Below the pieces are notes generated by a model. That model was not told where the DNA came from. It did not search any database and saw nothing but the letters and a program-made list of their open reading frames with translations. A DNA stretch of 64,000 nucleotides from Macrostomum lignano (lineage: Eukaryota), in contig NIVC01002884.1 of the NCBI GenBank assembly GCA_002269645.1, positions 1-64,000 on the forward strand, written 5' to 3'. Shown piece by piece: positions 13,237 to 50,175 of the stretch. A program made the position numbers and the translations under genes. Positions within the stretch are counted from its first letter, which is position 1. Each line of letters starts with the position of its first letter.

Positions 13237-13283
13237 GTGAGTCCGGGTGCCCAATGGATTTCAGCGGCTTCAATGACTTTCCA

Positions 13284-14657: not shown

Positions 14658-15191
<534 letters not shown>

Positions 15192-18906: not shown

Positions 18907-18934
18907 GTGAGTCACTTCTGCTGATAAGATTCAA

Positions 18935-19610: not shown

Positions 19611-19612
19611 AG

Positions 19613-23245: not shown

Positions 23246-23804
23246 ACTGATTGATAGATGGTGTGACCGCAATTGCAGGGTGTATCAATAGACGCTGGAC
23301 CACAATTCAATTCTGGCACAAAATACCACCCCGGAATCGAATTCAGATATGCCACTCATCCAATAAAAAGAATTTCACAAAAGCCAAAACTAAGGATTTG
23401 GTTCCGACTGAGTAAGACTGCCTCTGGCTCAAGTCTATAAATTGCAATAAAAAAGTTGAAGAGTCTTGTCGATCAGGAACTGTGAGACAAAGCTGAATCA
23501 CTTTTTGAAAAGATTTTTTATGACTGGCAAAGCATCTTTCACAGCTTAACTAACCATGAATGTTAGCTGCGGCACCTGCTCATGCCAATCTTATTTTGCC
23601 TCTGCTGGGCTGAAGATCAAGAAATTTTAGTGCAAATGTGATTTTTAAAGAGGCTGGGCAACTGTCTACACATGGGTTGGGATTTCCAGGCAACTGTAGA
23701 CGATCCTTTACCATTTGCTTGCTAAATTTATGTCCTCTTATGTAGAAAGCAAGTTTAGTTGTGCATTTTTTATCATTGGTCAAACTTAATTTAGACAGGT
23801 GAGA

Positions 23805-25512
23805 GTCAGGAGAGAATCCTGACATGATGATATCCGAATGAGAGTCAGGAGAATCCTGACATGATGATATCCGAATGAGAGTCAGGAGAGAATCCTGACA
23901 TGATGATATCCGAATGAGAGTCAGAGAATCCTGACATGATGATATCCGAATAAGAGTCAGAGAATCCTGACCTGATGATATCCGAATGAGAGTCAGGAGA
24001 GAATCCTGACATGATGATATCCGAATGAGAGTCAGAGAATCCTGACATGATGATATCCGAATGAGAGTCAGAGAATCCTGACATGATGATATCCGAATGA
24101 GAGTCAGAGAATCCTGACATGATGATATCCGAATGAGAGTCAGGAGAATCCTGACATGATGATATCCGAATGAGAGTCAGGAGAATCCTGACATGATGAT
24201 ATCCGAATGAGAGTCAGAGAATCCTGACATGATGATATCCGAATGAGAGTCAGAGAATCCTGACATGATGATATCCGAATGAGAGTCAGGAGAATCCTGA
24301 CATGATGATATCCGAATGAGAGTCAGGAGAGAATCCTGACATGATGATATCCGAATGAGAGTCAGGAGAGAATCCTGACATGATGATATCCGAATGAGAG
24401 TCAGAGAATCCTGACATGATGATATCCGAATGAGAGTCAGAGAATCCTGACCTGATGATATCCGAATGAGAGTCAGGAGAGAATCCTGACATGATGATAT
24501 CCGAATGAGAGTCAGAGAATCCTGACATGATGATATCCGAATGAGAGTCAGAGAATCCTGACATGATGATATCCGAATGAGAGTCAGAGAATCCTGACAT
24601 GATGATATCCGAATGAGAGTCAGAGAATCCTGACATGATGATATCCGAATGAGAGTCAGAAGAGAATCCTGACATGCTGATATCCGAATGAGAGTCAGGA
24701 GAGAATCCTGACATGATGATATCCGAATGAGAGTCAGGAGAGAATCCTGACATGATGATATCCGAATGAGAGTCAGAAGAGAATCCTGACATCCGAATGA
24801 GAGTCAGGGAGAGAATCCTGACATCCGAATGAGAGTCAGGGAGAGAATCCTGACATCCGAATGAGAGTCAGGAGAGAATCCTGACATCCGAATGAGAGTC
24901 AGAAGAGAATCCTGACATCCGAATGAGAGTCAGGGAGAGAATCCTGACATCCGAATGAGAGTCAGAAGAGAATCCTGACATCCGAATGAGAGTCAGGAGA
25001 GAATCCTGACATCCGAATGAGAGTCAGAAGAGAATCCTGACATCCGAATGAGAGTCAGAAGAGAATCCTGACATCCGAATGAGAGTCAGGGAGAGAATCC
25101 TCACATCCGAATGAGAGTCAGAAGAGAATCCTGACATCCGAATGAGAGTCAGGGAGAGAATCCTCACATCCGAATGAGAGTCAGAAGAGAATCCTCACAT
25201 GACATCCGAATGAGAGTCAGGACAGAATCCTGACATCCGAATGAGAGTCAGTAGAGAATCCTGACATCCGAATGAGAGTCAGGAGAGAATCCTGACATCC
25301 GAATGAGAGTCAGAAGAGAATCCTGACATTTGAATGAGAGTCAGTAGAGAATCCTGACATCCGAATGAGAGTCAGTAGAGAATCCTGACATCCGAATGAG
25401 AGTCAGAAGAGAATCCTGACATCCGAATGAGAGTCAGAAGAGAATCCTGACATCCGAATGAGAGTCAGAAGAGAATCCTGACATTTGAATGAGAGTCAGT
25501 AGAGAATCCTGA
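23805..25512. repeat. Two-domain satellite: 36-39 bp units to about 24790, then 31-32 bp units
   Basis: Long unit GAATCCTGACATGATGATATCCGAATGAGAGTCAG(GA)GA; the short unit lacks GATGATAT. Confidence 0.96.
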
Positions 25513-25728
25513 GAATTCGAATATGAATATGAGAAATCGTCTTCACCTAAACCAGATCCCAAGCTCAAAGCCCATATATCGTTAGCTAAGATTGATTGTT
25601 AAATCAACATTGACGGATTAACCAAGTCAGCTACATCAGATACATGTAAGCCTCAAAAAAGATTCTTCAGTCTGTCATCTGTCTTTCTAACTAGTGTACA
25701 CTTCCGGTGGATCAGTCGCACTACGGAT

Positions 25729-25730
<2 letters not shown>

Positions 25731-25804
<74 letters not shown>
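25731..25804. repeat. (GA)n microsatellite
   Basis: Direct reading. Confidence 0.98.
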
Positions 25805-25807
<3 letters not shown>

Positions 25808-26356
25808 CCGGAAGTAGCGACACGGGGGGTTGGGAGAATTGGGATAATTATACCCAGCAGTCTTGGCAAGGATGAGTAAGGAGATTTGGGATAAAATCTC
25901 TGAGAGGAAGTGAATTCCTTGTCAAAGCTATGAACTGCCGGCGTTACACTCGGCATCAGTCTTGCTTCCAAGTCTCACTTTGCAGATTGTTGAGTCACTC
26001 ATTGCGCTGCTCTGAGTCCTTTAGCTTTTGTATGAAGCCAATGATCCCCTATTTTCCCATTCTCTCCCCCCCCAACCAGAGCCAGAACCAGATCCTCTTC
26101 TCTGTTAGATGTTTGAGTAGAACAGAAAAAAGACCTGCTCAACTGAGACGTTGAGCGTGAAACGATTTCGAAAAGAATGAATTTCCAATTTCATAATCCT
26201 GCATGATTTACTATACTAGAAGGAATTACAACAGATAGGTAGGACTTCTAGAGAGTATCGGGACTGGAATCGATTCCTAGAATTCATACAATAATATGGT
26301 AAATGTTAGCTATATATTAATTACAAGTAAAGACTTACTGTGTTGTTAAACTAAAC

Positions 26357-26979
26357 CAGGGTTCGGCAACCTCCGGCCCGCAAAGACTTTCTATGCGGCC
26401 CGCGAACTTCCTTAATCTTAATTATTATAATCTGGCCCGCACCTTTATTGTAACTTCATTGTTTCTCCCACAAAAGTTTTGTGCACAAAATGGGGAATTT
26501 CTTTCCTCAATTGCCAACTTTAATGACAAAATAGTAATGAGACACGAACTGATCGTGTAAGTGGCTGTTTACAAACTCTAGACAGACAGCACATCAGTTC
26601 AAACTTTCGAATAGAATAGAAATAGGGGAACTGGCGGCGAAGGAAAGTGAGGTGGTGGCGGGCCAACAACGGGAGTACAAATGTAGTAATTTAATAAAGA
26701 CCCAGGGGCGGATTCTGGATGGTAAAGACCCAGGGGGCGGATTCTGGAGGGTAAAGACCCAGTGGGGCAGATACTGGAGGGTAAAAAACCAGGGGGCGGA
26801 TTCTGGAGGGTAAAGACCCAGTGGGGCAGATACTGGAGGGTAAAGACCCAGGGGGCTGATTCTGGAGGGTAAAGAAAGACCCGGGGGGGGGGTGAAGTAA
26901 TCGGGGGCGACCTGTGGCCCGTGGTCTTGAACTGAAAGCCTCATCTGGCCCTCAAGTGGAAAAAGGTTGCCGACCCCTG
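26357..26979. mobile_element. Non-autonomous hAT (Charlie-type) MITE, 623 bp
   Basis: 16-bp TIRs CAGGGTTCGGCAACCT / AGGTTGCCGACCCCTG (1 mismatch); perfect 8-bp TSD AACTAAAC at 26349-26356 and 26980-26987; internal 30-bp tandem repeat at about 26693-26880. Confidence 0.92.
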
Positions 26980-28440
26980 AACTAAACTATATAATCTCTA
27001 CATGTAGTTTTAAAAGCGTTTTTTTTCACTCTTTCTCCGGGCTGCGGGTCCCAAATTCCATCCAGTGGCTGCTTAGCCAGGGACTGCTGTATAAATAGCA
27101 ACGTTGGACTTAAAGCAAAAATTTCCTCTCCTCTCTCATCTCCTCTTCTGTCTCTTCTCATCTCTCCTATTATCTTCTCTTTCATCTTTTCTCTAATCCC
27201 ATCTCTCATCTTCTCTCTCGTATCTCGTCTCTGCCTTCACCTCTCGTCTCATCACTTGACTTACTTGACTTGACTTACATGTAATCTCATCTTTCAGCTC
27301 TTCTCTTTCTCATGAGCTGGATTCTTTGTCTGGCCCTTGAGGTAAAAAATATTCTCCAACACCTTGTGTAAATAAGCAAAGAGCATGACACACCAGCTAC
27401 TGCAGGGATCCGTGAGCGCGTCTTACACTAGCTTCCAGTCCAATAGTGATACATCTATAGAAGTCCCTGGCCTAACTGAATGAGTTAGAATATGTTGATG
27501 CTCTGTCAGATTTTTTCCTACAGTGTTGGTAGTTGATAGAAAGTGTTGGACCCAATGGAGACGCAGTGATATTTCTAAGCCAGAGGCAGCTTGGAGGCAA
27601 GCTGTAGCTACAGTTAGGAAAAAATTGAAGAAAAAAGCAGAAAATTCGGGATCCACATAAACAATAACACGCACCAGTAACCAGGATTTGTAAAGCAAAC
27701 GCATACAGACAGACTGCCTGCCTGCCTTATATCTGCTTCATTGTCACCAACAATAAATGATTAGTAATCGCATATCAACCATAGGATTTTATGCGTGGTA
27801 TCATATTAGTAGTATACCGGATGTACACAAGACTCCAAATCAGGACTGCAAGCCAGATGACAGAGGAGAGGGAATAGAGGAGAGGCGAGAGACGAGAGAG
27901 AAGATAAGTGGAGAGATGGGAGTAGAGCTGAGAAGAGACAAGTCTTAAGCAGACCGGATTGCTATTGTGAAGTTTCAAAGGACTCGACCCGAGGGCCGGA
28001 TTGAGAGGAGTTCGCCACGACCTCTGTTGTTGGAAGTATGCTCAGTCTACAAAGTTGTATAGAAAAATGGCCCTAGTCGTCAGAACTCCATTCATTATCC
28101 TAAGAAAGTCAATGTCACGTGATACGCAATCGAACGAGGATAAATGAAGTGAATCTGCTTATAAAGCCGTTTCGGAAATACGACAATTAGAAAGGATGTT
28201 CTCGAATGAGTCCCAAATCGGCTAGGGATTTGTAATTTGTAATTTTTTAACGATCGAGGTAAAATCAACGTCACAATCGGTAAGCAGTCATGAGAGCACG
28301 AACACGAACAGGGTGTACTGCAGCCAATTGACATTGTGAGGCAGTAGTGTACACCTCTCAATGCCTTGGACCCTTGGAGGTTGGCCCTTCATGGGCGTGA
28401 ACTGCAGGACAATTTTCTTGGACAAGCCTCAAATTAATGT

Positions 28441-34559: not shown

Positions 34560-34795
34560 GGTTGCTAAACTTTTCGACGATGTGATTTTTCGAGCTTATG
34601 AAGGCTCCATCACAAGCTCGAAGGGTCACAACGTCGAAAACTGATTTAGCAGACACCGTCACGATTGCTCGAAAAGGTACAAGCTCTAACCGTAACCCTA
34701 ATTAACCTAACCCTACCCAAACCCCAACCTTTTTCGAGCTTGTGATGGTGGATGCTTTTCGACGATGTGATTTTTTGAGCTTGTGATGGGCCCCC
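34560..34795. mobile_element. Possible non-autonomous Helentron/HINE-like element
   Basis: Repeated TTTTCGACGATGTGATTTTTCGAGCTT, inverted GCTCGAAAAGGT / ACCTTTTTCGAGC pair, central TAACCGTAACCCTAATTAACCTAACCC telomere-like tract; family assignment is by resemblance only. Confidence 0.35.
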
Positions 34796-35224
34796 ACACT
34801 GTTGACAGGCCAATGTCATACAGCTGTGCAAAGTTAGAAGTTTATGAAATGAAGGGCCAGTTTGCCTCTCATCTGCTTCAAGGTCAGCCGATCGGTTCTC
34901 TTCGGCACAAGCTATGAAGCATTGGATTATTCCTGGGGTCAATTTGGTGTGCTTTTTACCTCCTAGAGGGGACAGGGGAGTCTGGAGGGGAAGGAGGGGA
35001 GGATGAACAGAATCTGGTAGCGAACTATCAGGCCCGATAGTGAGCGGCTAAGTTGTTAAATTTGTTTCAAAAAAGAGAATAGACAAAACTCTCTAATTTA
35101 TGCAGTCGGGGAATAGGGGAAGAAAACTAAGGGATAGAGAGAAGATTGGGAGACCGCCAAGTCATTTAAACCCAAAAAACTAAATTCTAACTGTTTTCAT
35201 ACTTTGCAGTCGTAGCCGCTTGTC

Positions 35225-38200
35225 ATGAGCGATTCATCATCAACAGCCAATGCGGAGCTGATGGATGACGAGAAGCTAAAAGAAAATGCAGAGCAGGAAA
35301 AGAAAGAAAAGGAAGAGAAAGAGGAGAGGGAAAAGCAGGCTGCAAAGGATTTTGTGGCCGCCAAAGAGAAAGAGGCCATTGAGAGGCACACAGAAGAGTC
35401 ACGGGCATTGAAAGCCGTAGAAAAGCATGCTGAGCAAGCGGCAGCAGGCGAGAGGAATCAAAAGCTGCAAGATAATTCAGAAGCTCAGAAAAAGCTGGAC
35501 TCAGGCCAGCAAATGCTAGAGCAGAATCAACAGCAGAGGCAACAATTGACTCGACCCCTATCAGACACTGAAGTAGTTGAAGTCCTATCCAGTGCTGCAG
35601 AGGGAGCTGCTTTAAAAGGTTTGTTCTTCTTGGAGGGCCAATGGGTTCGAAAAGAGCGTCAGCTCATGGAGATTTGCGAACCATTATCATTTATTCCATC
35701 AGATCTGAGTAAAAGCTTTTATGAGGAATTCTCCACACAGAAGCAGCTGGACAACTTCAGCTCGTCTTTGACTACAGGGGAGCTGAAAGTTGGAATGCAA
35801 GCAGATGTCAATGTTGGACTTTCCGCAACTAAAGCGAAAGCAGATGCCTCATATTACAAAGAAGGCACTCAGGGCACAGAGAAGCACAAAACGAGCTGCT
35901 TCATCTCCCGTTGCCGTGTTCACACCCAGGCAGCTGGCGCATGCAATTTAAAGCAGTCTCAGCTTCGACTTTCAGCAGAAGCTGTAGAAGAGCTAAAGAA
36001 GATAGATAAAGAGCTCAATCTGAAAGGCAAGGCTGACAGCTCGATTGAAAGTTTTTTCTCCAACTTTGGCAGCCATGTAACTTACGGAACAGTGTATTTT
36101 GGGACCCTGTTCGTTACAACTGCAGAGTACAAGAGCGAGAGATTGGAGGACGCTGAAACGTACCGGGAACTTGTGAGCAAGGAATTAGATGCATCTTTTG
36201 CGACTGCTTTTGGACCCCGGGTCGGTTTTGGAGCGCATGGCAGACTTGCAAAGGGAGAATCTACAAATCGAGAGTGTTCAAGCGATCAAAGAATGGAGAA
36301 TATTGTTATAAAAAGCACTGAAAGAGGCAACGGTGGCACTGTTGAAGAGCCCCAAAACTTTGCTATCATCACAAAGCTATCATCTCAACATGGAGCTTGG
36401 AACTTAGTAAAGCATCACAAAAGTGAGTTCCACAACCCTTCAGCCCTGTCACAAGCACTCAAGTCCGTGTGGGAGTCCCTCACTGGTCTTCGCGACGAGG
36501 AAGTGGATGGCGAATGCTCTGATGCAATTGAATCAGCAAATGAATTCGTTAAAGGCGTTTGCAGCGTCATCAGCAACTCAGGCCAAATTCAAACTCTGAA
36601 GCAGTGGGAGGATCGCTTGAGAACTGTGTGCGACAAGCTGGAACGAATTGAGCAGCTCACAGTTCCTGATCGCAAAGGTGAAGGCTGGGTGCACTTAGAA
36701 AGCGTTCAGCAGTTTCTTGAAGCATTCTGGTCGGAAAAGCGTGATCTGGATTGCTTTGAAGGAGAAGCCATCAAAAAGCAATTGAAGCGCCTGATTGAGC
36801 TGTCGGGAAGCAAAGAGTTTCCGAAAAAAGAAAAGATTGTCTGCCTAATGCAGGAAAAATCGGTGAAACCGAAGTACACTGCTTTGAGTGATATGCGAAT
36901 CACAACACCGGAACAACTATTAGATGCTATCCGCAGCCGAACGCTACCAGACATGCAAAGAGAGATCAGCAAGCCGGGTTGTGATGAAGAAAAAGTGTTA
37001 CAAGTTGTTCGGCAAGACCTCACAGCTGCAGTGAGACATTTGCTCAAGCATCTTGAAGCCGATCAAAAAAGAGCACTGTTTGTGACACTTTTGGCTCTTC
37101 TAGAAGCGTCGTTTCAGCTTGAAAACGAAGAATTCGACTTGCTACTCACTCGAGAAAAGATTGAAGCAATGACTGAAAATCTTGATGAAATGATTCAGGA
37201 ACTCAGGAAACTTGAAAACACTGGAGAGCCACAATTCATTGATTGTCAGTTGTTAAAAATCCTGATCCTACATGAAGGAGGTAAATGGAGTTTTCGTGAA
37301 AGTGCTATAAGCCTGTTGAACCATGTTGCCTGGACTTCAACAGTGCGACAGGCGGTAGAGAGTTTCAAGACGTCTAAAGACTGGAACAGTTTGAGCGAAA
37401 AAGTGAATGGACTATTGACAAACTTCACCAGGGATGGAAAGCCGCTGCAGCTCAGCTTTGCTGTAGACGAACCCTCACAAAATTCGGTTGAAGTGCCATC
37501 CACAGAGTTTCTGGAAGTGACACGAAATTCTCTTACAGAAGACCAGAAAAAACTTTTCAGGATTTTAAATCTAACAGAGAGCTTTCCGGACAAGATTACT
37601 CCCTGTGAAGTCATGAAGCTTCAGGATGAGAGTCAAGCTTCGCCAAACCACATGGAAGATATTGCTTATCGAATATTGAAAGCAGTTATTATGACTGACT
37701 ATGAATCGGTGAGGAATTTTTTAAAAACTAAGTTAAAAACCTCGTCTCCTGCAGCACCTGCAGCGATAAAAAACGGTTGGTATAAAGGCGAGGACAGCTC
37801 AAAAGCTGAGGAAGGTGCAGAGGTCTCACCGTTTCCTTCGGATGTTTTTCTTGCCTGTTTTCTTTGCTGCGATGCCAGGCTAAAGCAGCTGATAGCAGAG
37901 AAGCTTTTCGACTGCAAGATGGCTGTTCCGATAGCTTGGAGTGCTGCAGAAGGTGTGCAGCTGTTCACCTGGCCTCTCAGATCATGCGTTCTCAAGTACA
38001 AAGTCCATGGTGAAGTCAATGTTCAGAAGCATATGATTTCTGATTATTTTCGTGTGATATCTGTACTTAGGCTTGGCGTTAGCACGGTTTCTAAGTCTCA
38101 GATAATCAACAAGTGCATCGATGACAAACATTTGGCGTTCAGCGAGCCATCGGAATCAAGAAGCAGCAGAATTTTAAGTGCCGGCAGCATTGAGCAAGCT

Positions 38201-41200
38201 TGGATATTCCCAACTGCAGATAGTAACCCTCTTGAACTGAACGAAGCTGCTTGCGTCCTGAATTTGAGGGGTGACGCCATGAAGTTTGTGAAACAGCGAC
38301 AGTTTCTTGCTGACGTGTCAGCCTGCGTCATTGTACTGCTCCCCGATGATGAGGGCTTGGATACTCAGCAGCAGAGTGCAGTAACAGAATCTCTCAGTGA
38401 CCTATTCAAGAAAAATAAAAACCTCCTGCTGGTTTCAACTTCGATCGATGTTCCACGCTATGTAGAACAACTGACGTCAGCTGAAAACTTTGGCAATGAT
38501 TTTATGGACTCAGTGTCAATAGTTATTGGTAAAAAGAGGCTATCTGATTGCGTGAATGATGTAAAGATACAACTCAGCAATAGGCTAAGCGAGGCGCAAC
38601 AAAATTCTATTTCAATTAATGCTATGATTGAAAACGCAAAAAAATTTACAGGTTGGCAAGTTGATGAAGTTCAGAGAGAAATTCGTTTGCAGCAAAAAAA
38701 TGCTGAAACACTGGTTCGCACGGCTCGTAGCATTTCGGTGGAGCAAAAGAAATCGTTGTTTCCATTGCAAGAAGAGCCTTGGAAACAGATTGCAAAATTA
38801 GAGAAAGGCATTGTAAGAAATGTCCAAAAATTGAGCTCGGAAGAAAAACTTAAGCAAATTGATGAGGATGAATCAAGGATCAGAGAGCTTCGACAAAAGC
38901 AAATGGAGCTTCTATCGAATGAAATGGAAAATCCGAAAGGCTTTATGAAGTTATTTTTCGATTTTCTTAACCAAGCCTCAGAGGATTCGGCTGTGCTTAT
39001 CTTTTTACAGTGCTTGAAGATTAGTTTTGATGCACAGGCTACTCTAACTGAGGCTCAGGAAGAACAGAATAAAAGAGTTGGAATCGAGTATATTCTCCGT
39101 GAGGTCTGCCAGGTGTACGAGGCAATTGTGAGTACCGATAGCATGGCTACAAAATATCGAGATTTCACCGACAAGCTGCTCACCTCCACTGTGCAGCTGC
39201 TGCTGCATGGACACCCAATTGAGCTGATGGATGGAGACGTCAGCTGCATCCCTACCAAGTGGGTCGAGGCGCTGATGAAAAAACTGCACGAGACCCTCGG
39301 TGACAAATCATTGCTGGTTGTGTCAGTGCTGGGAGTTCAGAGTTCTGGAAAATCAACGCTGTTAAACACCATGTTCGGATTGCAGAATGCAGTTAGTGCA
39401 GGTCGGTGCACAAAAGGTGCATTTATGCAGCTGGTGCAAAATGACCCAAGGAAATCAGGCCTGCCAATAGATTTCGTCATAATCATAGATACTGAAGGCC
39501 TGCGTTCATCAGACAAAGGAGATGCAGGAAGGAGCCTCGATAACGAGCTGGCCACAGTGGCAATCGGGCTGGCTGACGTCACCATCATCAAAATTATGGG
39601 TGAAAATGCAGCAGAAATTTTAGACGTATTGCAGATTGTGGCTCATGCGTTTTTGAAAATGCGGGCAGCATCAGAAAATCTGGTGCGAAACAAATCCTGT
39701 CTGTTTATTCACAAAGACGTGTCTGCAACAGACTCGAAAGAGAAGACCCAGACTGCTCGTGATCGGCTGCTCGAGACGCTCAACAAGACGGCGCAAGCAG
39801 CAGCAGCTGATCAAGGCATTGAAGAAGTGAAGAGCTTTAGTGACATCATAGCTTTCGATTGCAATGAAAGTGTGATTTTTCTACCAGCTCTGTGGGAAGG
39901 CGAGCTGCCTCGAGCGCCAGTGAACCCGGGGTATTGCCGTGGAATACAAAACGCTAAATGCCGGTTATTTGAGTGCTTGCCCAACGCAGCTGAGTCGAGG
40001 CTGACTTTGAAACAATTTTCCACAAGACTAAAGGACCTGTGGGAAGCAGTTTTGAAAGAAGACTTTTTGTTCAGCTTCAAGAATACATTAGAGATCAATG
40101 CTTACCGAGAAGTTGAAAGGTGTTACACTGAGCATAGGAAAAAGCTGGAACTAGGCGTCTGGACTAATGTCACAAAGGTCCATCTACCGAAAATGCGATC
40201 ATGCACAGATATAGATCTCTTGTCTCGTACGCTTAGAGAATTGACTTCTGAAACTACGAAATACATTGAAGAGCGTTTCGGAGAAGTAAATAAAGAGCTA
40301 AAGAAATTCTTCACAAGCCATGACCAAAACCAGATTATTGTGCAGTGGAAGGAAAGAACTCTGCTACATTTGGATGATGATAAAGACAGGCTAATACGCG
40401 AACATACTTGCAGGCTTTGTGAAGTGAAAGAAGAGCAACGCGTTCTGCTTCAGAGTAAAGGAAAGTCTGATAAGTGCAAGAAGAAGGTATTTAAGAAAGC
40501 AGGCAGCCTAGCTAAAGAAATGAAAAATAAAGAAATGAAAATGACAGAATCAGAGGTAGAAGAGAAATTTGACGTCTTCTGGGAGAAGGAAATGAGCGAA
40601 TTGTCGCGCACTGACAAGGCTCCAACTGACTTTCATGGCACGGCTGAGAAAATTCTTCGGGAGTTGCATAGTGAAAAAAATTCTATAATTGGTGAAGTAA
40701 TCGACTTTTTTCGGAGCCATGTGAATAGTTCAGTAAACCTGGACGAGTCATTGAAGGAAATACTTATCGAATTCAATCGCCAGAAGAAAAACTGCTTGTA
40801 TAAGCGATTAGATGTCGAAAAGACTGATTACGATTGTCAACAACAAAGTTTGGACATAGCCGAAGGAATTTTTGACAAAATAAAGGAGCAGGAAATCGAT
40901 TCACTCGTTGAAGAAGAAAATAACATTGCTAAGGTGTTCGATGACATTGCTAAGCATATTGATGGAGAGGTCCGCGACTTCAATTCAGAAGAGCAACATG
41001 GCGATGAAAAAAGACTAATCACTCTCTTACCGCAGTTCAATATGTGCCTGCAAGCATTTTCAACGTTTTATGCAGCAACAGTGTTTACGGAGAGGCATGA
41101 CAAATTCGAGCGAGAGCATGGTGCCAAAGCGAAGCTGCAGAACTTTAGGCCAACAATTCTACAGGAGTTTCTGGGCATTTTTAGACAGGAGAGTGAGGAA

Positions 41201-42328
41201 GTGAGCAGTGCGTGCCTCATCGGCAATCTTCTTGGCGAAAGCGTGCGCACGGAGGCTCTCCGAGATGCTGCGAATGATATTGCTAGAGAAATCATGGAAA
41301 CAGCTAGCTATGAAAGCAAAAAAGAATTGTTTGAAACAATCATGTCCAGCTTGGTCAACAGATTTGAGGAACAAGAACTTTCTGAAGAAAATAAGTTTCA
41401 GGAATTCATGGATTTCGTGCAAAACAGCAACGAATTTGCAAAAAAGTGGTTTAGAAAACAAGTTAATACTAAATTCTTTCAGAAGGTTGACAGAGAAGAT
41501 TCAGAGTACACACTTCTTCTGAGGAAAGCAATTCAGACCCACATGAAGCCGATTTTTGAATCTGTAGAGGAAACAACCAAGAAAGTGAAGACACAGCTTG
41601 AAGAAGCAGGAGAGGATGCTAAACTTTCATCCAACCTGTTGCAGATGTGGACTGACACATATAGTAATTGTTACGACAAAGCAGGTGCAGTCAACTTCGA
41701 TGTGACAACTGACCGATCAATTAATGATCTTGAAAACTTTTCTAAGCTACTTCTAGAGAAACTGAAAGCTATAGAAGAAGATATACTCAGAAACGCTCCA
41801 ACAAAGTACGAGGAAATGAAATGGGATGGAAAAGCACCTGAAGTATACACAGGCAAGTTCTTCGGAATTCATAGGAATGCTCGTATGTTAATTGTGCGAA
41901 GCTTTCCTTGCTTTTCTGCGATTTTCGGCGGTTACAGAGATAAAACAGAGAAACTTTTACCAAAATGGTTGCGGAACCAACAACCACTCTGTCTGATGGG
42001 GTGGGTAGAAGAAAAGACGGACAAATTGGCTCTTGTCAGTTGCCGTAGAGCTCGAAGATTCACTTTGAATGAAGAAAAAAAAACAATCAAGAAAAAATTA
42101 CTGTTTTTACCAACTGATTTTGAGGTATGTGATGAAGTAACGCAAAGCCAGTTTTGGCAATGGTTTGTGTGTAAGTTCAAGAAGGAGTTGGAGTCAAAAT
42201 ACGGCAAAGAATTGGCGGCTGTGCCAAAAGAGTGGCAGGATATTAGTTTTGACGAGGCCAAGGACTGGCTTTCAAGACATGAACTTCAGGCTGAGGAGCC
42301 AGTTAATAGATCGTGCAACATCCTGTGA
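35225..42328 (+). CDS. GVIN1: Interferon-induced very large GTPase 1-like (VLIG/GVIN1, URGCP family) protein, 2367 aa, single coding exon, N-terminal MACPF-like domain
   Basis: Uninterrupted 7.1-kb ORF. G1 GVQSSGKS (39332-39355), G2 SAGRCTKGAFMQL, G3 DTEGL (39488), FIHKDV. URGCP-like CCDARLKQLIAEKLFDCKMAVP and RLGVSTVSKSQIIN. C-terminal FWQWFVCKFKKELESKY...PKEWQDIS. N-terminal FFSNFGSHVTYGTVYFGT (36053-36106) resembles the MACPF signature. Confidence 0.9.
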   Translation: MSDSSSTANAELMDDEKLKENAEQEKKEKEEKEEREKQAAKDFVAAKEKEAIERHTEESRALKAVEKHAEQAAAGERNQKLQDNSEAQKKLDSGQQMLEQNQQQRQQLTRPLSDTEVVEVLSSAAEGAALKGLFFLEGQWVRKERQLMEICEPLSFIPSDLSKSFYEEFSTQKQLDNFSSSLTTGELKVGMQADVNVGLSATKAKADASYYKEGTQGTEKHKTSCFISRCRVHTQAAGACNLKQSQLRLSAEAVEELKKIDKELNLKGKADSSIESFFSNFGSHVTYGTVYFGTLFVTTAEYKSERLEDAETYRELVSKELDASFATAFGPRVGFGAHGRLAKGESTNRECSSDQRMENIVIKSTERGNGGTVEEPQNFAIITKLSSQHGAWNLVKHHKSEFHNPSALSQALKSVWESLTGLRDEEVDGECSDAIESANEFVKGVCSVISNSGQIQTLKQWEDRLRTVCDKLERIEQLTVPDRKGEGWVHLESVQQFLEAFWSEKRDLDCFEGEAIKKQLKRLIELSGSKEFPKKEKIVCLMQEKSVKPKYTALSDMRITTPEQLLDAIRSRTLPDMQREISKPGCDEEKVLQVVRQDLTAAVRHLLKHLEADQKRALFVTLLALLEASFQLENEEFDLLLTREKIEAMTENLDEMIQELRKLENTGEPQFIDCQLLKILILHEGGKWSFRESAISLLNHVAWTSTVRQAVESFKTSKDWNSLSEKVNGLLTNFTRDGKPLQLSFAVDEPSQNSVEVPSTEFLEVTRNSLTEDQKKLFRILNLTESFPDKITPCEVMKLQDESQASPNHMEDIAYRILKAVIMTDYESVRNFLKTKLKTSSPAAPAAIKNGWYKGEDSSKAEEGAEVSPFPSDVFLACFLCCDARLKQLIAEKLFDCKMAVPIAWSAAEGVQLFTWPLRSCVLKYKVHGEVNVQKHMISDYFRVISVLRLGVSTVSKSQIINKCIDDKHLAFSEPSESRSSRILSAGSIEQAWIFPTADSNPLELNEAACVLNLRGDAMKFVKQRQFLADVSACVIVLLPDDEGLDTQQQSAVTESLSDLFKKNKNLLLVSTSIDVPRYVEQLTSAENFGNDFMDSVSIVIGKKRLSDCVNDVKIQLSNRLSEAQQNSISINAMIENAKKFTGWQVDEVQREIRLQQKNAETLVRTARSISVEQKKSLFPLQEEPWKQIAKLEKGIVRNVQKLSSEEKLKQIDEDESRIRELRQKQMELLSNEMENPKGFMKLFFDFLNQASEDSAVLIFLQCLKISFDAQATLTEAQEEQNKRVGIEYILREVCQVYEAIVSTDSMATKYRDFTDKLLTSTVQLLLHGHPIELMDGDVSCIPTKWVEALMKKLHETLGDKSLLVVSVLGVQSSGKSTLLNTMFGLQNAVSAGRCTKGAFMQLVQNDPRKSGLPIDFVIIIDTEGLRSSDKGDAGRSLDNELATVAIGLADVTIIKIMGENAAEILDVLQIVAHAFLKMRAASENLVRNKSCLFIHKDVSATDSKEKTQTARDRLLETLNKTAQAAAADQGIEEVKSFSDIIAFDCNESVIFLPALWEGELPRAPVNPGYCRGIQNAKCRLFECLPNAAESRLTLKQFSTRLKDLWEAVLKEDFLFSFKNTLEINAYREVERCYTEHRKKLELGVWTNVTKVHLPKMRSCTDIDLLSRTLRELTSETTKYIEERFGEVNKELKKFFTSHDQNQIIVQWKERTLLHLDDDKDRLIREHTCRLCEVKEEQRVLLQSKGKSDKCKKKVFKKAGSLAKEMKNKEMKMTESEVEEKFDVFWEKEMSELSRTDKAPTDFHGTAEKILRELHSEKNSIIGEVIDFFRSHVNSSVNLDESLKEILIEFNRQKKNCLYKRLDVEKTDYDCQQQSLDIAEGIFDKIKEQEIDSLVEEENNIAKVFDDIAKHIDGEVRDFNSEEQHGDEKRLITLLPQFNMCLQAFSTFYAATVFTERHDKFEREHGAKAKLQNFRPTILQEFLGIFRQESEEVSSACLIGNLLGESVRTEALRDAANDIAREIMETASYESKKELFETIMSSLVNRFEEQELSEENKFQEFMDFVQNSNEFAKKWFRKQVNTKFFQKVDREDSEYTLLLRKAIQTHMKPIFESVEETTKKVKTQLEEAGEDAKLSSNLLQMWTDTYSNCYDKAGAVNFDVTTDRSINDLENFSKLLLEKLKAIEEDILRNAPTKYEEMKWDGKAPEVYTGKFFGIHRNARMLIVRSFPCFSAIFGGYRDKTEKLLPKWLRNQQPLCLMGWVEEKTDKLALVSCRRARRFTLNEEKKTIKKKLLFLPTDFEVCDEVTQSQFWQWFVCKFKKELESKYGKELAAVPKEWQDISFDEAKDWLSRHELQAEEPVNRSCNIL

Positions 42329-44206
42329 CGATTATGAAGTACTTTTTGTTAAATATGCAACTATATAAAAATAACTTTAAGATAATGAGGTTTGATATCA
42401 GCGAAAATATTAGCTATCAATACTGAGATCACTACAGTAGGTACATTCTGAATTCCAAAGAACTACGCACGTAGTTTAACCGAATGTACTGCACCATTTC
42501 TTAATAGCTAGCTCGTAAATTGCTAAGCCAGTAATTGTTCATTGATGAATTTTTGTTTAACTTACATCTTTATTTCTGTCAGTATGATACAAAATTTATC
42601 CAAATAAGCAAAAAATGATTACTCAAAAACCTTACCGATTTACGAGCTAAAAGTTTGGAACCATCATTTTGATTAAAGTATTTCGGCTGAAGTCGAATTT
42701 CAAAACCGTTTGTTGGTATTGTTCGTTCAGTTGATTTTTAGTTTACGAGCGTATTTGACAAAATTACTAAATCACATTAAAACTTTTTCCAAGACCCTCA
42801 GGCATCGTTTTTTAGCTATCTGATATGCCTGCAAAGTCTTACAGAAACTAATATTTTTGAGTAGCTACGTTCATAATTCCTAGATTTTTATAGTCATGTT
42901 TTTTTTCTCATTTTTTGTACGATCGTAATTTAAATTGTAAACCCATAATTTAAACTGTGTTGAACTACCCATGTATTGCAAGCTTGTAACCACTTTCTCA
43001 ATTAGCTAGAGACTTCGTTTTTATGACTCATTTTGCATATTTGTAATTGAGGTCTGTTTAACTGCTCTATAATTTTGATTAGCTACACTATAGGGTGATA
43101 GAAATCGAACCCGAAGTCAATTATTCTCGCTTATTTTTTGCGTTTCTTATATATAATTTTTTTGCACCTGAAAAGCAGATTTTTCGACTTCTCTATATTA
43201 TGCTTATTATTATCCAGATTCGTTGAGCGGTACCGATGAATAATATCAACTTTTTATTTTATATCAACGTATTTATCTTTTATTGTACAGGATGTTCAGG
43301 AGCGATAGTTGAAGCCCCAACATATATTCCAGATTCTCAACCGCGTATAAATTTAGTTATCGAATTGTTCTTTATTAATTGAAATAAATATATTCAAATT
43401 TTAATTTTTTAATTATACAACGTAAAACATCACAAATAGTAATCTGCACTATATATACATGTATGGTTATCTGCTTATTATCCTAAATGTTTCGCCTGCA
43501 GTTTGCTTCCTCTTTCAAATTGAATAGATTAAAGAATTACAAGGGTTAATGGCGTCAATGTGATAACCAGGAGTACAAAAATTGCCCACGCGAAGTTTGC
43601 CAGCCGAATTTTGCAAATCGATGATTGCCGAAGTGCACATAACATTTCCCTGGTTCTTTGACTCTAGTATGTCATTGTAAGATTGTAATACGAGTATAGC
43701 AACATGCGTTTAAGGTCGAAAATTAGACTATCGATCAATGGAAACTCGAGGCTACAACTAAATATAACTCGTACGCTAGTAGCATGTAATTTAGGTGCGT
43801 TATGTACATGTATGCCGATGCTTGCTTTAATTTGTTAAAACGATGAGTGGGTGGGAAATCCAAGATGCGGGCAAATTAAGCGGGCAATCCTTGGTGGCAA
43901 ATTTCCCACGGGCAATTTTCATAGACCCGATGATATAATCTCTCTAATCGTTCAGTCCGCGTCATCCCTTTTTTCTTGATATCACCCTCCAACTCTTGTG
44001 AGTTTTGCCCCCCCCCCCGAATGAGCAGTCTAATCTAAATATACTAAATCTCTAATATTTGTATGCTTGTCCATAACGCTCTAGTCCTATATACTAAATC
44101 CATAATACTAAAAAAGGTTTGTTGGTATGTGATCGAGTTCTGAAAAATTTTAATCTTAATAAAAGAGGATAAATGAAGTGCAGTTCATATAAGCGCAGCT
44201 TGTGGC

Positions 44207-44590
44207 CAAGGACCACTAGAAGTCTAGAAGTTACCGTTGTATCAGGACGTAACACACTTAAATATTGCAAAATTATTTGAAGGCCCGCTTGTTTGCATCG
44301 CAGCTAAACTTTGGATCAGCTGCACTTAAAATGACAATTTTTCGCCAGGTTGTTTGCAATTTCGTTTGCTTTAAGTTGACGCAAAGTTTGGCCTTATATC
44401 TACATGTAGGCGTGTAGAATAATGGCTTTACGCAATATTTCTTGCAGTTAAAAAGAATAAAGCTGGAGAGTCATTTTAACTATCATAAACATCGCTAAAT
44501 ACACTGTAAAACAGCGATCCTTCAAATAATAATTTTGCAATACTTAAGAGTGTTACGTCCCGATGCAATGGTAACTTCTAGTGGTCCTTG
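44207..44590. mobile_element. MITE with imperfect TIRs of about 75 bp
   Basis: CAAGGACCACTAGAAG...TTGCAAAATTATTTGAAGG (44207-44283) mirrors CCTTCAAATAATAATTTTGCAA...CTTCTAGTGGTCCTTG (44519-44590); no clear TSD. Confidence 0.75.
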
Positions 44591-46638
44591 AGTGTGACCC
44601 CTCCCGGTAAGACAAAACAGACTTTTTATTTATTTTTCCTATATTTCTTCCTCTTTTGACTTTGTCCTCCAATTACCAGTCATCAAGATTGGACACAAGC
44701 TTACGAGTCTGCTAGTCTGCCAGTCTGCTGCTCATCCAAATCTCTTCCACCTGTTGAAGCTTTTACTCGGATCTGTGAAGAGTCCGTACACTCTCAAAAC
44801 AGTAATCACCTTTCTGTCGCTGCTAAGTCGCTACTTGCTGCAGCCTCATCATCCGTGACGCATATCGGGGACCGCCGCTCCCTCCCTATCCCACTTGGCA
44901 AGCTGTGGGCAGTCCAGTACTCGAACTCTGAATGTTCCGCCTGCGATCGGTCCGCAGGGATGGAAGCGTAAAATATACAACAAAACCATTATCCATCAAG
45001 ATAAAAATATTGCAATAATCCTAAATCCAAACTAAATACATTAACAGGTCGTATGACATTTATAAATTTCTCTGATTCATACTGACCAAACCTAATGACC
45101 TTTAACAAGAGGAGAAAAAGGACCACTTATAAGTAGGACGCGACACTGCTTATTCTCTAGCATATTCTAGCGTCACTTTCTCTAGCCTCGCTTGCTGTCT
45201 GGTAACATAAAAATACATATACTCAGCAACATTCAAAACCGCCGACCAAGAGCATTGCCTTTCCAACTCTCACTCAGACGCACTGGGTCAGACGCAGTTT
45301 GCAAGCTACGCTGACACTAATGAAGCAGTACTAGCTAGCAGAGACCAAAAATTAAAAAAGAAAAACTCAAAACAAACCATTGATTTATCTGGTCTGTCCT
45401 CGCTCTGTTTTGCAAAATGATCACATAATTGAAATACAAAAATGATTCTGGCACTTTTGTTATTGTACAGGTAGGTTTTATAGGTATTCGGTAGTACGCT
45501 CTTGTTAATACGAGGGGTCACATGCGGAATTATTAGTCAAATAACAATAATTCATATACTACTTACTAAACAGTAGTTTTGAAGTTATTTGCATCAAGCG
45601 GTTCCCTTTGATGCGATAAACTTCACAAAGAAGCTGTCCTTAATTTTTATTCGGCACACACAACCGGTAACTTTATCAGGCATTAATAATTTTATCAATG
45701 TTCATTAAATTTGAAATTCGAAGTATAATAAAATAATTTCGCCATGATTGGACGATTGCAGCGTTCTACTCTTAAAGGAACATAAAAATAAATAATATGA
45801 GAGGTCTGTAGTGGGCTTTCTATGGGCTGGAAAATAGCCTATGCCAATAGGAAGCTTGCCCTAGATATAATCAATACTAACTGCTGTAGCTAAACTAATT
45901 ATTAAATATGAATATAGATTTCAAGCAATAAGGATTACTACAGTATGCTGCATCTCAATCAATATTTCTATTAAACTAATTCAAAAGCTGTCCTTATTAA
46001 TGCGACACCTGACTTTATGATCTATAAATTTAACTTCTATTGCTGTTTAGCAATGGATTGGAATTTCCAACATCCCAAATCTTCAGATTCTCAAACTATA
46101 CAATCTACCTCTACACAAAAGATGGAATATGGTAACTGATTAAACAGCTCATACAGTACTTTACAAACAGAGCTTATGGTATATGAGCATAAACAATCTT
46201 AGGGCAGAAAGAAAAAAACAAAATCTATGAGTGAGTGCATCAGGAAATTGCACTAACTGTCAGCATAAACAGTTCATACATAGAGAAAATAAAACTTTAA
46301 CTAAATAATTACACCAATTGTTTGTAAATCTTTGTGCAACCATAGTATTCATCATTAAAAAGGCCTCAAATCAATTTAGCCGCCCTAGATGAAAATTGAA
46401 CATTCAATGAAGCCAAAAATGGAAGCAAGATTTAACAAGCTAGTCTATGTACCTGCTGTATGGGCTTGCTGGAACATGCTCGGAGGTGCATATGAGCAGA
46501 ATGGGAATATATAAGAATACGAATAGCACTGCACAGATGCTTGCAAAAAGCTTTGCTAATGGACGAGTGTGATTCGTTCTGACGGGCAATGCTCTGCTTT
46601 TGAAGAATTATCCGTGATTTTTGACGTGGAAACACATG

Positions 46639-46648
46639 TTACAGCTGC
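46639..46648 (-). CDS. SLC25A37: Putative mitoferrin exon 4 coding part (adds QL*)
   Basis: Minus-strand acceptor TATTATTGAATTTCAG|GCAGCTGTAA; completes the phase-2 Arg codon from exon 3, then Q, L, stop. Confidence 0.45.
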
Positions 46649-46724
46649 CTGAAATTCAATAATAATAGTGGCCTCGTTAAACATGCAATTTTTTTTTCAA
46701 ATTAAGGCAGGAATGTCACACAAT

Positions 46725-47258
46725 GAATGGGTGACAGATACAGATACAGAATGTGTGACAGGTAGAGACACAGAATCGGTGACAAGTACGAGTAGAGACA
46801 CAGAGTGAATGACAGGTAGAGACACAGAGTGGGTGACAGGTTAAAGACGCAGACTGGGCGACAAGTAAAGACAGAATGTGTGACAGGTTAGAGACACAGA
46901 GTGGATGAAGTGGATGACAGGTAGAGACAGAATGGGTGACAGGTAGAGACACAGAATGGGTGACAGGTAGAGACACAGAATCGGTGACAGGTAGAGACAG
47001 AATGGGTGACAGGTACAGACACAGAATCGGTGACAGGTAGAGACACAGAAAGGGTGACAGGTAGAGACACAGAATCGGTGACAGGTAGAGACAGAATGGG
47101 TGACAGGTAGAGACACAGAATCGGTGACAGGTAGAGACACAGAATCGGTGACAGGTAGAGACAGAATGGGTGACAGGTACAGACACAGAATCGGTGACAG
47201 GTAGAGCACAGAATCGGTGACAGGTAGAGACAGAATGGGTGACAGGTACAGACACAAA
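46725..47258. repeat. 20-24 bp minisatellite (GTGACAGGTAGAGACACAGAATCG/ATGG)n in the last mitoferrin intron or 3' UTR
   Basis: Tandem array starting about 10 bp from the donor at 47269. Confidence 0.92.
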
Positions 47259-47269
47259 ATGAAACTCAC

Positions 47270-47544
47270 CTGTTGTCAATCACCAGCGGATTAACCTGAG
47301 ATCCAGCCGCCGCCGCCGTAGCGGTGGCAGTGGCGGCCGCCCGCCCGCTCTCGCCGCTCAAATACCATTTGAAGGTTTCGTACACCAGCCAGGAGATGGC
47401 GGTGCCGGGCATCTGGAAGACAACGCGAGCTTGGACGCCTTTGAAGTAGCCGGCGAAGCCCTCAAGTCTGTAGACGGTGCGCAGGGCGCTGCCGATTGAA
47501 GCTACGGGGCGGAGTCGGCCGGCCGCTTGCAGTGCGCACTGCTC
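47270..47544 (-). CDS. SLC25A37: Mitoferrin exon 3
   Basis: Acceptor CTCTCCACAG|GAG; EQCALQ...RTVYRLEGFAGYFKGVQARVVFQMPGTAISWLVYETFK; ends AACAG|GTGAGT (read-through gives AGG TGA, stop at 47266-47268). Confidence 0.9.
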
Positions 47545-47589
47545 CTGTGGAGAGTGGGGACGGGACCAGAGGGAGAAAATGTTTCAATG

Positions 47590-47765
47590 TGAGGGCAATT
47601 CTTTGGGTATCTGTGGGGCGATTTTTAGGGTATATGTGGGGCGATTCTAGGGGTATCTGTGGGGCGATTCTTGGGGTATCTGTGGGGCGATTCTTGGGGC
47701 ATCTGTGGGGCGATTCTTGGGGTATCTGTGGGGCGATTCTTGGGGTATCTGTGGGGCGATTCATT
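47590..47765. repeat. About 24-bp minisatellite (GGGGCGATTCTTGGGGTATCTGT)n in mitoferrin intron 2
   Basis: About 7 tandem copies. Confidence 0.88.
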
Positions 47766-47887
47766 GGATATTTATTGAAAGACTTCTAGTGTACCTCTAG
47801 GCGGAATTCTTTAAAGTACACGCCATTCTAAGGCCGCATGCAGGGCAATTTCAAATATTCTGACAGGCTATGTAATAGGCTACTCAC

Positions 47888-48186
47888 CTGAGTATTAAGC
47901 AGAGTCTTGCACACGTCCAGAGGATTAGTGCAAGCCGCAGCGCAGGCGCCGGCAATAGCGCCGCTAATCACGTGAGTGCTAGGCGCGTAATGCCGCTCAG
48001 AATTCACATAGTCCTGAGCCAGTTCGTAAGCGTTGAAGTGTACAACGTGGAAAGGTATATTCATTACTAGCTGGGTTGTGTAGGCCCGGTAGAGTGCGGC
48101 CAGGCCTTCGCTTCGAAGTACAGCGCGAAAACAGTCGAGAGAGTTGGAGTAGGGCGAGCGATACACTTGAACTCGCTGCTTCACGG
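47888..48186 (-). CDS. SLC25A37: Mitoferrin exon 2
   Basis: Acceptor CCAACCAG|CC; AVKQRVQVY...[16 protein letters not shown]...[13 protein letters not shown]; donor CAG|GTGAGT, phase 0. Confidence 0.93.
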
Positions 48187-48869
48187 CTGGTTGGGAGATT
48201 GAAAATCAGATATTGCATATAGTCTCATGGAAGAACCATGCAGTAAAAGAACACTTATAATTGTTTGGGCAATGTATTAGATGCTGGTATTAACAGTAGA
48301 AAGACCACGTTATTTTTCCACATGGGGAAAGACCACGGGGGTGTATTACAAATACACACGACCCATCTCACGATAGCTCGCAAACCGAATTACCGATTCG
48401 TAAAAGTCCTCCAAACGGATCAAAATTTCAACCCTTTCCGACGAACTAACTTTCAAAGTCATCCGACGTCAGCATCGTCGAGATATTCAACGATTCTTGT
48501 TGAAGACACTGGTGGCAAGGACAACCAACACAACACTGTATAAACCCTTATGGTGAATCCATATTGGCTCAATAATCTGGGTCCATCTGTCTTAGAGGCC
48601 TTTGTTCTCAGCATCCCAGGCACCAGGGTCCCCTTCATCACCGTCTGGAGCATCGGCGGCGACCGTCGGGACCTACAACAAAAGCACCCCATCGGCATTT
48701 CATCGGCGTTCCCAAAGCTGAAATGGAAGAATCCTCTTCTGCATGCAGCATTCAGTCAGTGGACACAATCGGTGAATGAAATGGACGATGGCGACCCTCT
48801 AGGCTGACCTGTAGACATACAGGCGACCTTCGGGACCTTCAACGGAGTGCCACCACGCGGCCCTGACGA

Positions 48870-49091
48870 GCTGGCACCCCCAACATCGTGATTTTTCTAT
48901 CAAGGCACCAAACCAAATTTTAAATTGGAGAGCTACAGATTTAATTGGCGACTGAAAAATATAAAATATTTAAATTTCAAAAATGAAATCTGTAACTCTC
49001 CAATTTAACATGGGGCAAAAGCATTGTATAATATGCAGACATGCCTGGTTTGGTGCCTTGATAGAAAAATCACGATGTTGGGGGTGCCAGC
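48870..49091. mobile_element. 222-bp hairpin/MITE with 46-bp perfect outer IR and a nested inner IR
   Basis: GCTGGCACCCCCAACATCGTGATTTTTCTATCAAGGCACCAAACCA and its exact reverse complement at 49046-49091; inner TTAAATTGGAGAGCTACAGATTT / AAATCTGTAACTCTCCAATTTAA. Confidence 0.85.
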
Positions 49092-50175
49092 AACTGAGGA
49101 TCTGGGAGGGACAGCCTAATTAGGCAATCAACACATTTATTGGCCATGAACTGACACGGGACACAAATTACTCATTTATTTACCTATTTGTTAGGTTAGG
49201 AAAAAATTAAAGGCTACGGAATAATATATGAAAAATCGAGTCATAATTTAAACCGGTAAACCGGGAGTCGTTATCAAACGAATGGGAATAATTTGTCAAA
49301 TTAAAATATTGTTGACTTTTTGTGACAAATGGTTTACATTAGATAAAGTGCTATTTTTACTACTGACTGATAGTGTTAGTAGCATCAGTAGCATATCAGT
49401 GTAAAACCTTAGCACTAGGGGTGTGCCGCTTAAAATTAAGATTAGATAGCGCAAAAAACTGACTGAAAAAACATAGCGAGCAACTATTTGTCATTAATAA
49501 TATAGAATTCTATTCAACGCGTAACTAAATGCAGTAAGCCAAAGATAGAGCGAACACACAAACCCCACTATCTGTTTTTTTTGGCACATACATGTACATA
49601 CATAGTACCGGTCTAGAAAGCTTTCTTACAGATAGAAAACCAAATCTACTAACCTTCGATCCAATACCAGACAGCACTGCACTGCCTGCTTTACTTTTAC
49701 TAATCAAAGCCAACGGCAATGAAAATAGCAAAATAAAACCAAGCCCCATTATAGATTTTAATTTACTTGCATGCTTAGGCATAACGCAAAAAAGGCGAGG
49801 AAACCCCACTAAGCCAGTAGCTGTCTTATTAAATCAATAAAGCATAAACGCTACATTCAAGGACGATCAGTGTTAACCCCCCCCCCATAAGCAATAAGCA
49901 GTTTTATTACAAGAGGAACAATGGAAATTTATTGCAGTATAGAAAACACACACAGAGCAGGTGGACTCATTTCTGTACTGGATCATGTGACAACGAATAA
50001 GCATACTTGCGTTTTCCATTTGGAATAATGTATACAATTAACTACGAGCTGAACTGCGAATAAATAAGAGCGCCGAAAACTGTCTATGATATTTGAACTT
50101 ATAGAAAACTGCGCCCGTAGTTCTTTTAACTAGATTATAGATTTGAAGCCGCAAAAAAAGCTTCTAAATCAGTAG

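Follow-up and report, generated by a model that had tools for sequence, protein, structure and literature searches.

The function of the giant GTPases of the VLIG/GVIN family has been an open question since their discovery. In the mechanistic study that we found for GVIN, human GVIN1 (formerly GVINP1) formed coatomers on cytosolic Burkholderia and an outer-membrane protein was displaced; the human gene is intronless, the shorter human open reading frame (ORF) that forms the coats has 1,808 aa, and neither an MACPF nor a perforin-like domain is mentioned (10.1101/2025.03.24.645074). Here we analyzed a gene of this family in the flatworm Macrostomum lignano, located on the forward strand of a 64,000-nucleotide stretch of DNA (GenBank assembly GCA_002269645.1, contig NIVC01002884.1, positions 1 to 64,000), which is called the window throughout. 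The initial annotation of the window, made from the letters alone, had proposed an MACPF-like pore-forming module fused to a giant GTPase in an invertebrate, and the host is indeed one. The overall best explanation of our results, to which we assign a probability of about 55%, is that the gene encodes a cytosolic giant GTPase whose MACPF module would perforate membranes when assembled by the GTPase.

It is practically certain that the window gene is a member of the GVIN/VLIG family. The best match of its product is the M. lignano protein BOX15_Mlig012665g1 (P0044; 2,371 aa, 87% identity, 100% coverage), followed by vertebrate GVIN1 proteins of ~2,400 aa from turtles, birds, a crocodile, frogs and a loach. 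Most of the 18 vertebrate GVIN1 matches are about 25% identical over 95-99% of the query, and an exact-protein look-up found no database record of the window protein itself. The protein is collinear with vertebrate GVIN1/VLIG-1, with MACPF-like, URGCP, URGCP_GTPase and GVIN1_C regions in the same order and the FGSH signature at the same alignment position. The coding sequence is one intronless 7.1-kb ORF, as in the human gene, and no signal peptide was evident in the vertebrate N-termini examined, which is a further likeness. Three features distinguish it from vertebrate GVIN1 and are clade-specific in this gene, namely a lysine- and glutamate-rich (K/E-rich) N-terminus in place of GVIN1_N, a C-terminal CaaX box (CNIL), and a signature ending in GT. 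For P0044, which is 87% identical, the GVIN1_C family (PF26772) is recorded. GVIN1_N (PF26771) is recorded for the vertebrate matches, but neither P0044 nor the flatworm paralog P0157 has it listed; the local Pfam copy gave no match to these newer GVIN1 families. None of the Pfam families GVIN1_N, URGCP_N, GVIN1 and GVIN1_C names the MACPF part. Interferons and a classical interferon system are not known from flatworms, so the description "interferon-induced" cannot apply to the flatworm gene.

The MACPF domain and its distribution in the family

A Pfam scan of aa 101-440 alone matched the MACPF family (PF01823) over aa 209-368; its 28.6 bits (E=1.9e-6) exceed the gathering score of 21.5. MACPF was not reported by the scan of the full-length ORF, and only the isolated segment gave the match, a possible reason for the absence of PF01823 from the precomputed domain lists of P0044 and full-length turtle GVIN1. 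Relatives of the window protein also matched the family themselves (9 of 23 sequences in one alignment and 22 of 65 in another; best E=1.5e-12), and precomputed Pfam annotation places PF01823 on two marsupial entries. In addition, UniProt has automatically given the name "MACPF domain-containing protein" to many N-terminal fragments, including the M. lignano paralog A0A1I8H5V1.

AlphaFold2 modelling of aa 101-470 with a 65-sequence alignment gave a predicted local distance difference test score (pLDDT) of 79 and a predicted template modelling score (pTM) of 0.75. The model has strands of 18-21 residues and two helix-plus-coil insertions, in line with the MACPF fold, in which a pair of helical clusters flanks a bent central beta-sheet. 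An earlier model, based on a shallow alignment of 23 mostly amniote sequences, was uninformative (pLDDT 37). When the model was compared with the PDB by Foldseek, 45 matches were obtained at E<=0.001, and all 50 of the matches listed were MACPF proteins. The best was pleurotolysin B (PlyB; E=6.9e-10), MPEG1/perforin-2 (E=1.2e-6) and C9 (E=1.3e-6) also matched, and C8, perforin, astrotactin-2 (ASTN2; E=9e-5), Plu-MACPF and TgPLP1 were further matches among those listed. The domain resembles the pore-forming MACPFs (pleurotolysin B, MPEG1/perforin-2, perforin, C8/C9) in structure, with Foldseek E-values from 6.9e-10 to 9e-5 and a probability of 1.00, whereas sequence identity is only 8-16%. The proposal that aa 100-430 would show the MACPF/CDC fold survived this structural check.

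The family profile matched the MACPF domain of C8-alpha in the PDB over about 200 residues (E=0.027); its top PDB matches, engineered gp41 helix bundles, were set aside as coiled-coil or linker noise. The profile built from the shallow alignment found no MACPF protein in the PDB and returned noise (TgMIC5 and EthR, by a chance "FFxxFGSH"), and a search of the full-length ORF against PDB sequences returned GBP G domains only, which is uninformative for the N-terminus. Because the Pfam match of the segment, the Pfam matches of the relatives, structure prediction with Foldseek, and the family hidden Markov model agree, the N-terminal region is predicted with high confidence to be a genuine MACPF fold.

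The module is widespread. A word-indexed homolog search with the segment gave four turtle fragments only, and the wider family came from an exhaustive profile search with the N-terminal domain. At E<=0.001 this search recovered 491 cluster representatives, of which 345 reached E<=1e-10; many are ~2,400 aa long. Among the named carriers are GVIN1-like proteins of toadfish, tarpon and sea urchin, the last with 2,418 aa and the architecture in full, and no fewer than four additional entries from M. lignano. The sequence FGSH-x7-GG is present in nearly all full-length vertebrate matches, about 335-350 residues from the N-terminus, which bears out the FGSH motif that the initial annotation ascribed to vertebrate GVIN1. 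The distribution over sea urchin, fish, amphibians, reptiles, birds and mammals indicates that the MACPF module is ancestral to the GVIN/VLIG family and not a flatworm invention. Novelty was consequently overstated in the initial annotation, in view of the 491 representatives that carry the module, the automatic UniProt names and the complete sea urchin protein: the family and its architecture are known, and this Macrostomum member is new. Full-text searches, with most subscription journals outside their scope, found no paper linking GVIN, VLIG or URGCP to MACPF or perforin-like domains; the sole co-occurrence of GVIN/VLIG and MACPF terms was in an unrelated fish transcriptome review.

Hairpin regions, GTPase domain and proposed mechanism

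In known MACPFs, the signature lies between two transmembrane hairpin regions (TMH1 and TMH2). The window protein has the same arrangement, with an F-G-S-H core (aa 281-284) between two regions of ~55 aa that show amphipathic alternation, as in the pore-forming members. The strings quoted in the initial annotation are present in the ORF, in which 35558-36484 corresponds to aa 112-420: FFSNFGSHVTYGTVYFGT at aa 277-294 (36053-36106), TGELKVGMQADVNVGLSATKAKADASYY at aa 184-211 (35774-35857) inside the modelled TMH1 region, and SKELDASFATAFGPRVGFGAHGRL at aa 318-341 (36176-36247) inside the modelled TMH2 region. The two alternating segments thus fall within the ~55-aa modelled insertions, at the places assigned to them. 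The suggested resemblance to the MACPF signature holds for the FGSH core and agrees with the Pfam score, but it fails at the end of the motif, which is GT here. Of 196 family members, 182 have the signature GG, among them the sea urchin protein and two other paralogs from M. lignano.

In the model, TMH1 is enclosed by strands E62-69 and E125-142 and TMH2 by strands E184-204 and E260-267; each region is a helix (210-229 in TMH2) that gives way to coil modelled at low confidence (all in model numbering). Residues 186-202 form a 17-residue run of strict hydrophobic/polar alternation, which is the longest of the ORF and was reached in 26 of 2,000 shuffles, and the beta-amphipathic moment is highest in TMH1, where this run is located. 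Across an alignment of 179 relatives, hydrophobicity with a period of two residues describes a strand-turn-strand at aa 185-194, 195-198 and 199-208, and a second one at aa 323-330 and 333-341 with a turn between them; the domain has no stronger period-2 signals than these two, of which the first ranks higher. Such a pattern suits a membrane-inserted beta-hairpin and would not be needed by the helical soluble state. Its conservation is apparently the best available evidence that the MACPF domain of the family keeps insertion competence. Judged from the fold and this pattern, the chances that the module inserts into membranes are evenly balanced.

The same chain was also said to carry a URGCP-like region and an intact RHD3/GBP-class GTPase. 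The URGCP region and an intact GTPase were both found: the G domain is of the VLIG type (URGCP_GTPase), with weaker Pfam matches to GBP (29.2 bits, above the cut-off of 21.1) and to RHD3_GTPase (30.8 bits, below its cut-off). The URGCP domain, which is the first large-GTPase-like domain, is probably a pseudo-GTPase, since its P-loop is degenerate (GVSTVSKS). In the second domain, G1, switch I (GRCTKG) and G3 are intact and conserved with vertebrates and the sea urchin, and the G domain is 41-44% identical to those of the urchin and vertebrates. Similar to GBP1, GBP2 and GBP5, the protein has a G domain of the dynamin superfamily, alignable at G1, switch I and G3, and ends in a CaaX-type box; by analogy a GTP-dependent coat on cytosolic microbes would be expected. 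Unlike the GBPs, it is about four times larger, belongs to the URGCP_GTPase family rather than GBP, and has GVQSSGKS in place of the P-loop with arginine (GLYRTGKS); the GBPs in turn lack an MACPF domain.

The window protein is cytosolic, as judged from its sequence. A splice-acceptor-like TTTGCAG precedes the ORF and may be used as a cis- or trans-splice site. Between it and the ATG at 35225 there is an in-frame TAG (35213-35215), 10 nt ahead of the ATG; no upstream coding exon is therefore possible in this copy, and hence no signal peptide. Secretion by way of an upstream signal-peptide exon was thereby rejected for this copy. At the paralog locus (L001) the matching codon is TGG, so that an upstream coding exon, excluded in the window copy, is formally still conceivable there. 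Transmembrane helices were not found, as no 19-residue segment of the protein reaches a mean hydropathy of 1.6. The in-frame stop after the acceptor-like site, the highly charged N-terminus and the lack of any segment with transmembrane-grade hydropathy together argue for a cytosolic protein without a signal peptide or transmembrane helix. The pore-forming MACPFs differ in being secreted or lumenal. In further contrast to them, the window protein has no C2, P2, EGF, TSP or PlyA-type targeting partner, its MACPF domain is fused to a GTPase scaffold of about 1,950 aa, and its signature lacks the second glycine. Separately, 13 conventional MPEG1 genes are present in M. lignano (PMC10781884).

The CNIL box is common to the window protein and the 87%-identical paralog P0044. 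None of the 18 vertebrate GVIN1 matches has it, nor do the other M. lignano paralogs or the sea urchin protein; one representative (P0188, 2,586 aa) ends in CNIS. A CaaX box with leucine at the last position, such as CNIL, is of the geranylgeranyl type, and CNIL is also the CaaX box of human GBP2.

Taken together, these features suggest the following mechanism. The protein is located in the cytosol. By homology with human GVIN1 and the GBPs, the intact VLIG-type G domain would drive GTP-dependent dimerization or coat assembly on a target membrane, and in this clade a geranylgeranyl group on CNIL may provide an additional anchor. Coat assembly would concentrate the MACPF domains locally, and the ~55-aa helical clusters of TMH1 and TMH2 could then refold to amphipathic beta-hairpins and insert, as their fold and period-2 pattern suggest. 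As a result, the membrane of a cytosolic microbe or of its vacuole might be perforated or destabilized. Gating of the insertion by the GTPase is proposed by analogy and is tentative, even somewhat doubtful, and an immune role of the gene is suggested by its family resemblance.

Alternative explanations

Several observations weigh against perforation by a GTPase-assembled MACPF module. The Foldseek TM-scores are modest (0.35-0.45), which would be expected from two flexible insertions and extra domains on either side. The window protein and its closest paralog P0044 have GT instead of GG in the signature, and loss of the second glycine could impair the hinge. In the window sequence, TMH1 has a polar return strand, and the dN/dS of ~0.6 against the paralog (ratio of non-synonymous to synonymous divergence) is high. 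Several MACPF proteins are non-lytic. Moreover, the known animal MACPF effectors work from the extracellular or lumenal side, and we know of no precedent for a cytosolic one. The human ORF that forms coats falls about 600 aa short of the full-length family members and, judged by its length, probably lacks the MACPF part, which would mean that coating does not require MACPF.

Some of these points are also the case for the main rival explanation, in which the MACPF domain has been repurposed to a non-lytic role: as a scaffold it would help the GTPase coat to oligomerize or to bind its target (lipid or glycan), without ever opening a transmembrane pore. Non-lytic roles are well documented for this fold and have been proposed for the astrotactins, BRINPs and Torso-like. 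ASTN2 is among the structural matches, the signature ends in GT in the window copy and in GA in another M. lignano paralog, and the shorter human ORF suggests that the scaffold would work alone. However, astrotactin-2, the BRINPs and Torso-like, which share the MACPF fold and set the precedent for a role other than pore formation, are secreted or membrane proteins of development, and unlike them the window family keeps the hairpin-type amphipathic pattern. Both TMH regions retain the period-2 strand-turn-strand across the 179 relatives and have their full length of ~55 aa, and the best structural matches (PlyB, MPEG1 and C9) are proven pore formers. We therefore regard a purely non-lytic role as unlikely.

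Host-directed cell death is treated as a variant. In this explanation the GTPase-activated MACPF domain would insert into host membranes and kill the infected cell, in the manner of gasdermins, MLKL or resistosomes. It would fit a cytosolic protein with a CaaX box, which would direct it to host endomembranes or the plasma membrane, and a multi-copy, mosaic family that evolves fast, traits often seen in immune sensors and effectors. The comparison with gasdermins in the initial annotation holds as an analogy only: in both cases a regulatory or oligomerizing module may control a membrane-inserting module in the cytosol, as also in NLR/resistosome effectors, but neither Pfam nor the 50 Foldseek matches listed showed a sequence or structural relationship to gasdermins or NLRs, and membership in those families was rejected on the same results. 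Since human GVIN1 works at the bacterial surface and the CaaX box is limited to one flatworm sub-clade, an executioner directed at the host's own cells is improbable.

It is also conceivable that the window gene is a redundant member of a multi-copy family that is drifting toward a pseudogene, with its MACPF region as a relic. Compared with the paralog, dN is 0.059 and dS is 0.097, giving a dN/dS of 0.61 overall, with 0.52 in the MACPF region and 0.89 in URGCP. These high values, the missing second glycine and the many paralogs are what decay would predict. On the other hand, dN/dS is below 1 and both copies keep an intact 7.1-kb ORF at a dS of about 0.10, with, by rough estimate, ~310 non-synonymous and ~150 synonymous differences where non-synonymous sites are ~3.3 times more numerous. 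G1, switch I and G3 are intact, and conservation extends to the start context and the 3' flank. The identity between turtle and sea urchin is 52% in the GTPase, 34% in MACPF, 26% in URGCP, 23% in the C-terminus and 21% in the helical region; MACPF is thus the second most conserved region, so the module is not a decaying appendage. The gene is constrained yet fast-evolving, and decay is very improbable. A chance resemblance, in which FGSH and the alternating segments would be coincidental and no MACPF domain would exist, could appeal to the shallow-alignment profile search without MACPF, the uninformative first model and the full-length Pfam scan without MACPF, but the Pfam matches of the segment and the relatives, the second model, the period-2 pattern and the family profile all point to MACPF, and the Foldseek result refutes it, leaving it a negligible probability.

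The locus and the meaning for the family

The features of the gene are listed in Table 1. A tblastn search with the ORF found no second copy or fragment of it in the window. The window is collinear from 34731 to 47762 with positions 9518-22522 of the paralog locus, over about 13 kb at 93% identity; the flanks are 99% (3') and 96% (5') identical.

Table 1. Features of the GVIN/VLIG-family gene in the window, with window positions and the basis of each call.
Feature	Residues (aa)	Position	Strand	Basis
Splice-acceptor-like TTTGCAG		35203..35209	+	sequence; acceptor and ATG context kept at the M. lignano paralog locus
Complete single-exon ORF (coordinates with stop codon), GVIN/VLIG-family giant GTPase	2,367 aa	35225..42328	+	ORF list and homology
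K/E-rich low-complexity N-terminus	1-110	35225..35554	+	sequence; stands where vertebrates have GVIN1_N
Predicted MACPF/perforin-fold domain	~112-405	35558..36439	+	Pfam, AlphaFold2 model, Foldseek, family profile
Predicted TMH1 region (~55 aa)	170-224	35732..35896	+	AlphaFold2 model, alternation run, period-2 pattern
TMH1 amphipathic hairpin-tip pattern	185-208	35777..35848	+	family-wide period-2 hydrophobicity
MACPF signature FGSHVTYGTVYFGT	281-294	36065..36106	+	sequence; terminal GG replaced by GT
Predicted TMH2 region (~55 aa)	305-359	36137..36301	+	AlphaFold2 model, conserved period-2 pattern
TMH2 amphipathic pattern	323-341	36191..36247	+	family-wide period-2 hydrophobicity
URGCP domain	871-1163	37835..38713	+	Pfam PF25496, E=9.2e-49
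Degenerate P-loop GVSTVSKS in the URGCP domain	951-958	38075..38098	+	motif; S for G of GK[ST]
VLIG-type (URGCP_GTPase) G domain	1231-1571	38915..39937	+	Pfam PF25683, E=4.4e-95
G1 GVQSSGKS		39332..39355	+	motif; aligns to GBP1/GBP2 structures
G3 DTEG (DTEGL)		39488..39499	+	motif; aligns to GBP1/GBP2 structures
CaaX-type box CNIL	2364-2367	42314..42325	+	sequence at the exact C-terminus

The coding identity between the two loci is mosaic, with 99.3-99.7% at aa ~1684-1984, about 81% at aa ~1086-1284 and 85% at aa ~2184-2284, a pattern suggestive of a multi-copy family whose paralogs or haplotypes have undergone gene conversion or recombination. At the paralog locus, the next called gene downstream codes for a mitochondrial carrier (Mito_carr, 21376-27116, minus strand), and this neighbour may also be present in the window because the two are collinear at least to 47762. 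Upstream of the GTPase gene, ORFs with cadherin repeats lie at 4317-6083 and about 12274-13446 (plus strand) in GC-rich sequence (local GC up to 0.66). They match Pfam Cadherin (E=9.5e-54 over four stretches, and a second, weaker match), and are exons of a large cadherin/FAT-like gene. Long minisatellite arrays with 12-36-bp units in up to about 50 copies occupy 466-25512, 46725-51588 and 58436-63479, for example at 466-1770, 7113-8082, 23800-25510 and 50197-51588, and a 20-bp array at 22630-23255 is also found at the paralog locus with about 94% identity. The other ORFs longer than 120 aa on both strands were set aside, as they mostly overlap minisatellites and the cadherin exons are the only real coding sequences among them.

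As for the family as a whole, it is possible, at somewhat less than even odds, that GVIN/VLIG proteins are an ancient bilaterian class of perforin-like pore formers that act in the cytosol, are older than interferon and rely on a GTPase coat to bring their MACPF domains to the membranes of cytosolic microbes, of the vacuoles around them or of the host. Full-length members from flatworm to bird carry a conserved MACPF domain with hairpin-type TMH regions, and this offers a concrete effector hypothesis for these proteins, namely perforation from the cytosolic side. The hypothesis predicts a loss of the perforation activity wherever the gene is truncated, as it would be in human. A flatworm with transgenesis and RNA interference provides an interferon-free system, and Macrostomum, with its several diverged paralogs and a putatively prenylatable sub-clade, would lend itself to study as an invertebrate model. 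If the hypothesis is true, this would be the first functional description of a cytosolic MACPF effector in animals and of an MACPF linked to a GTPase of the dynamin superfamily. The family-wide, apparently insertion-competent perforin-like domain may be of more interest than this one gene.

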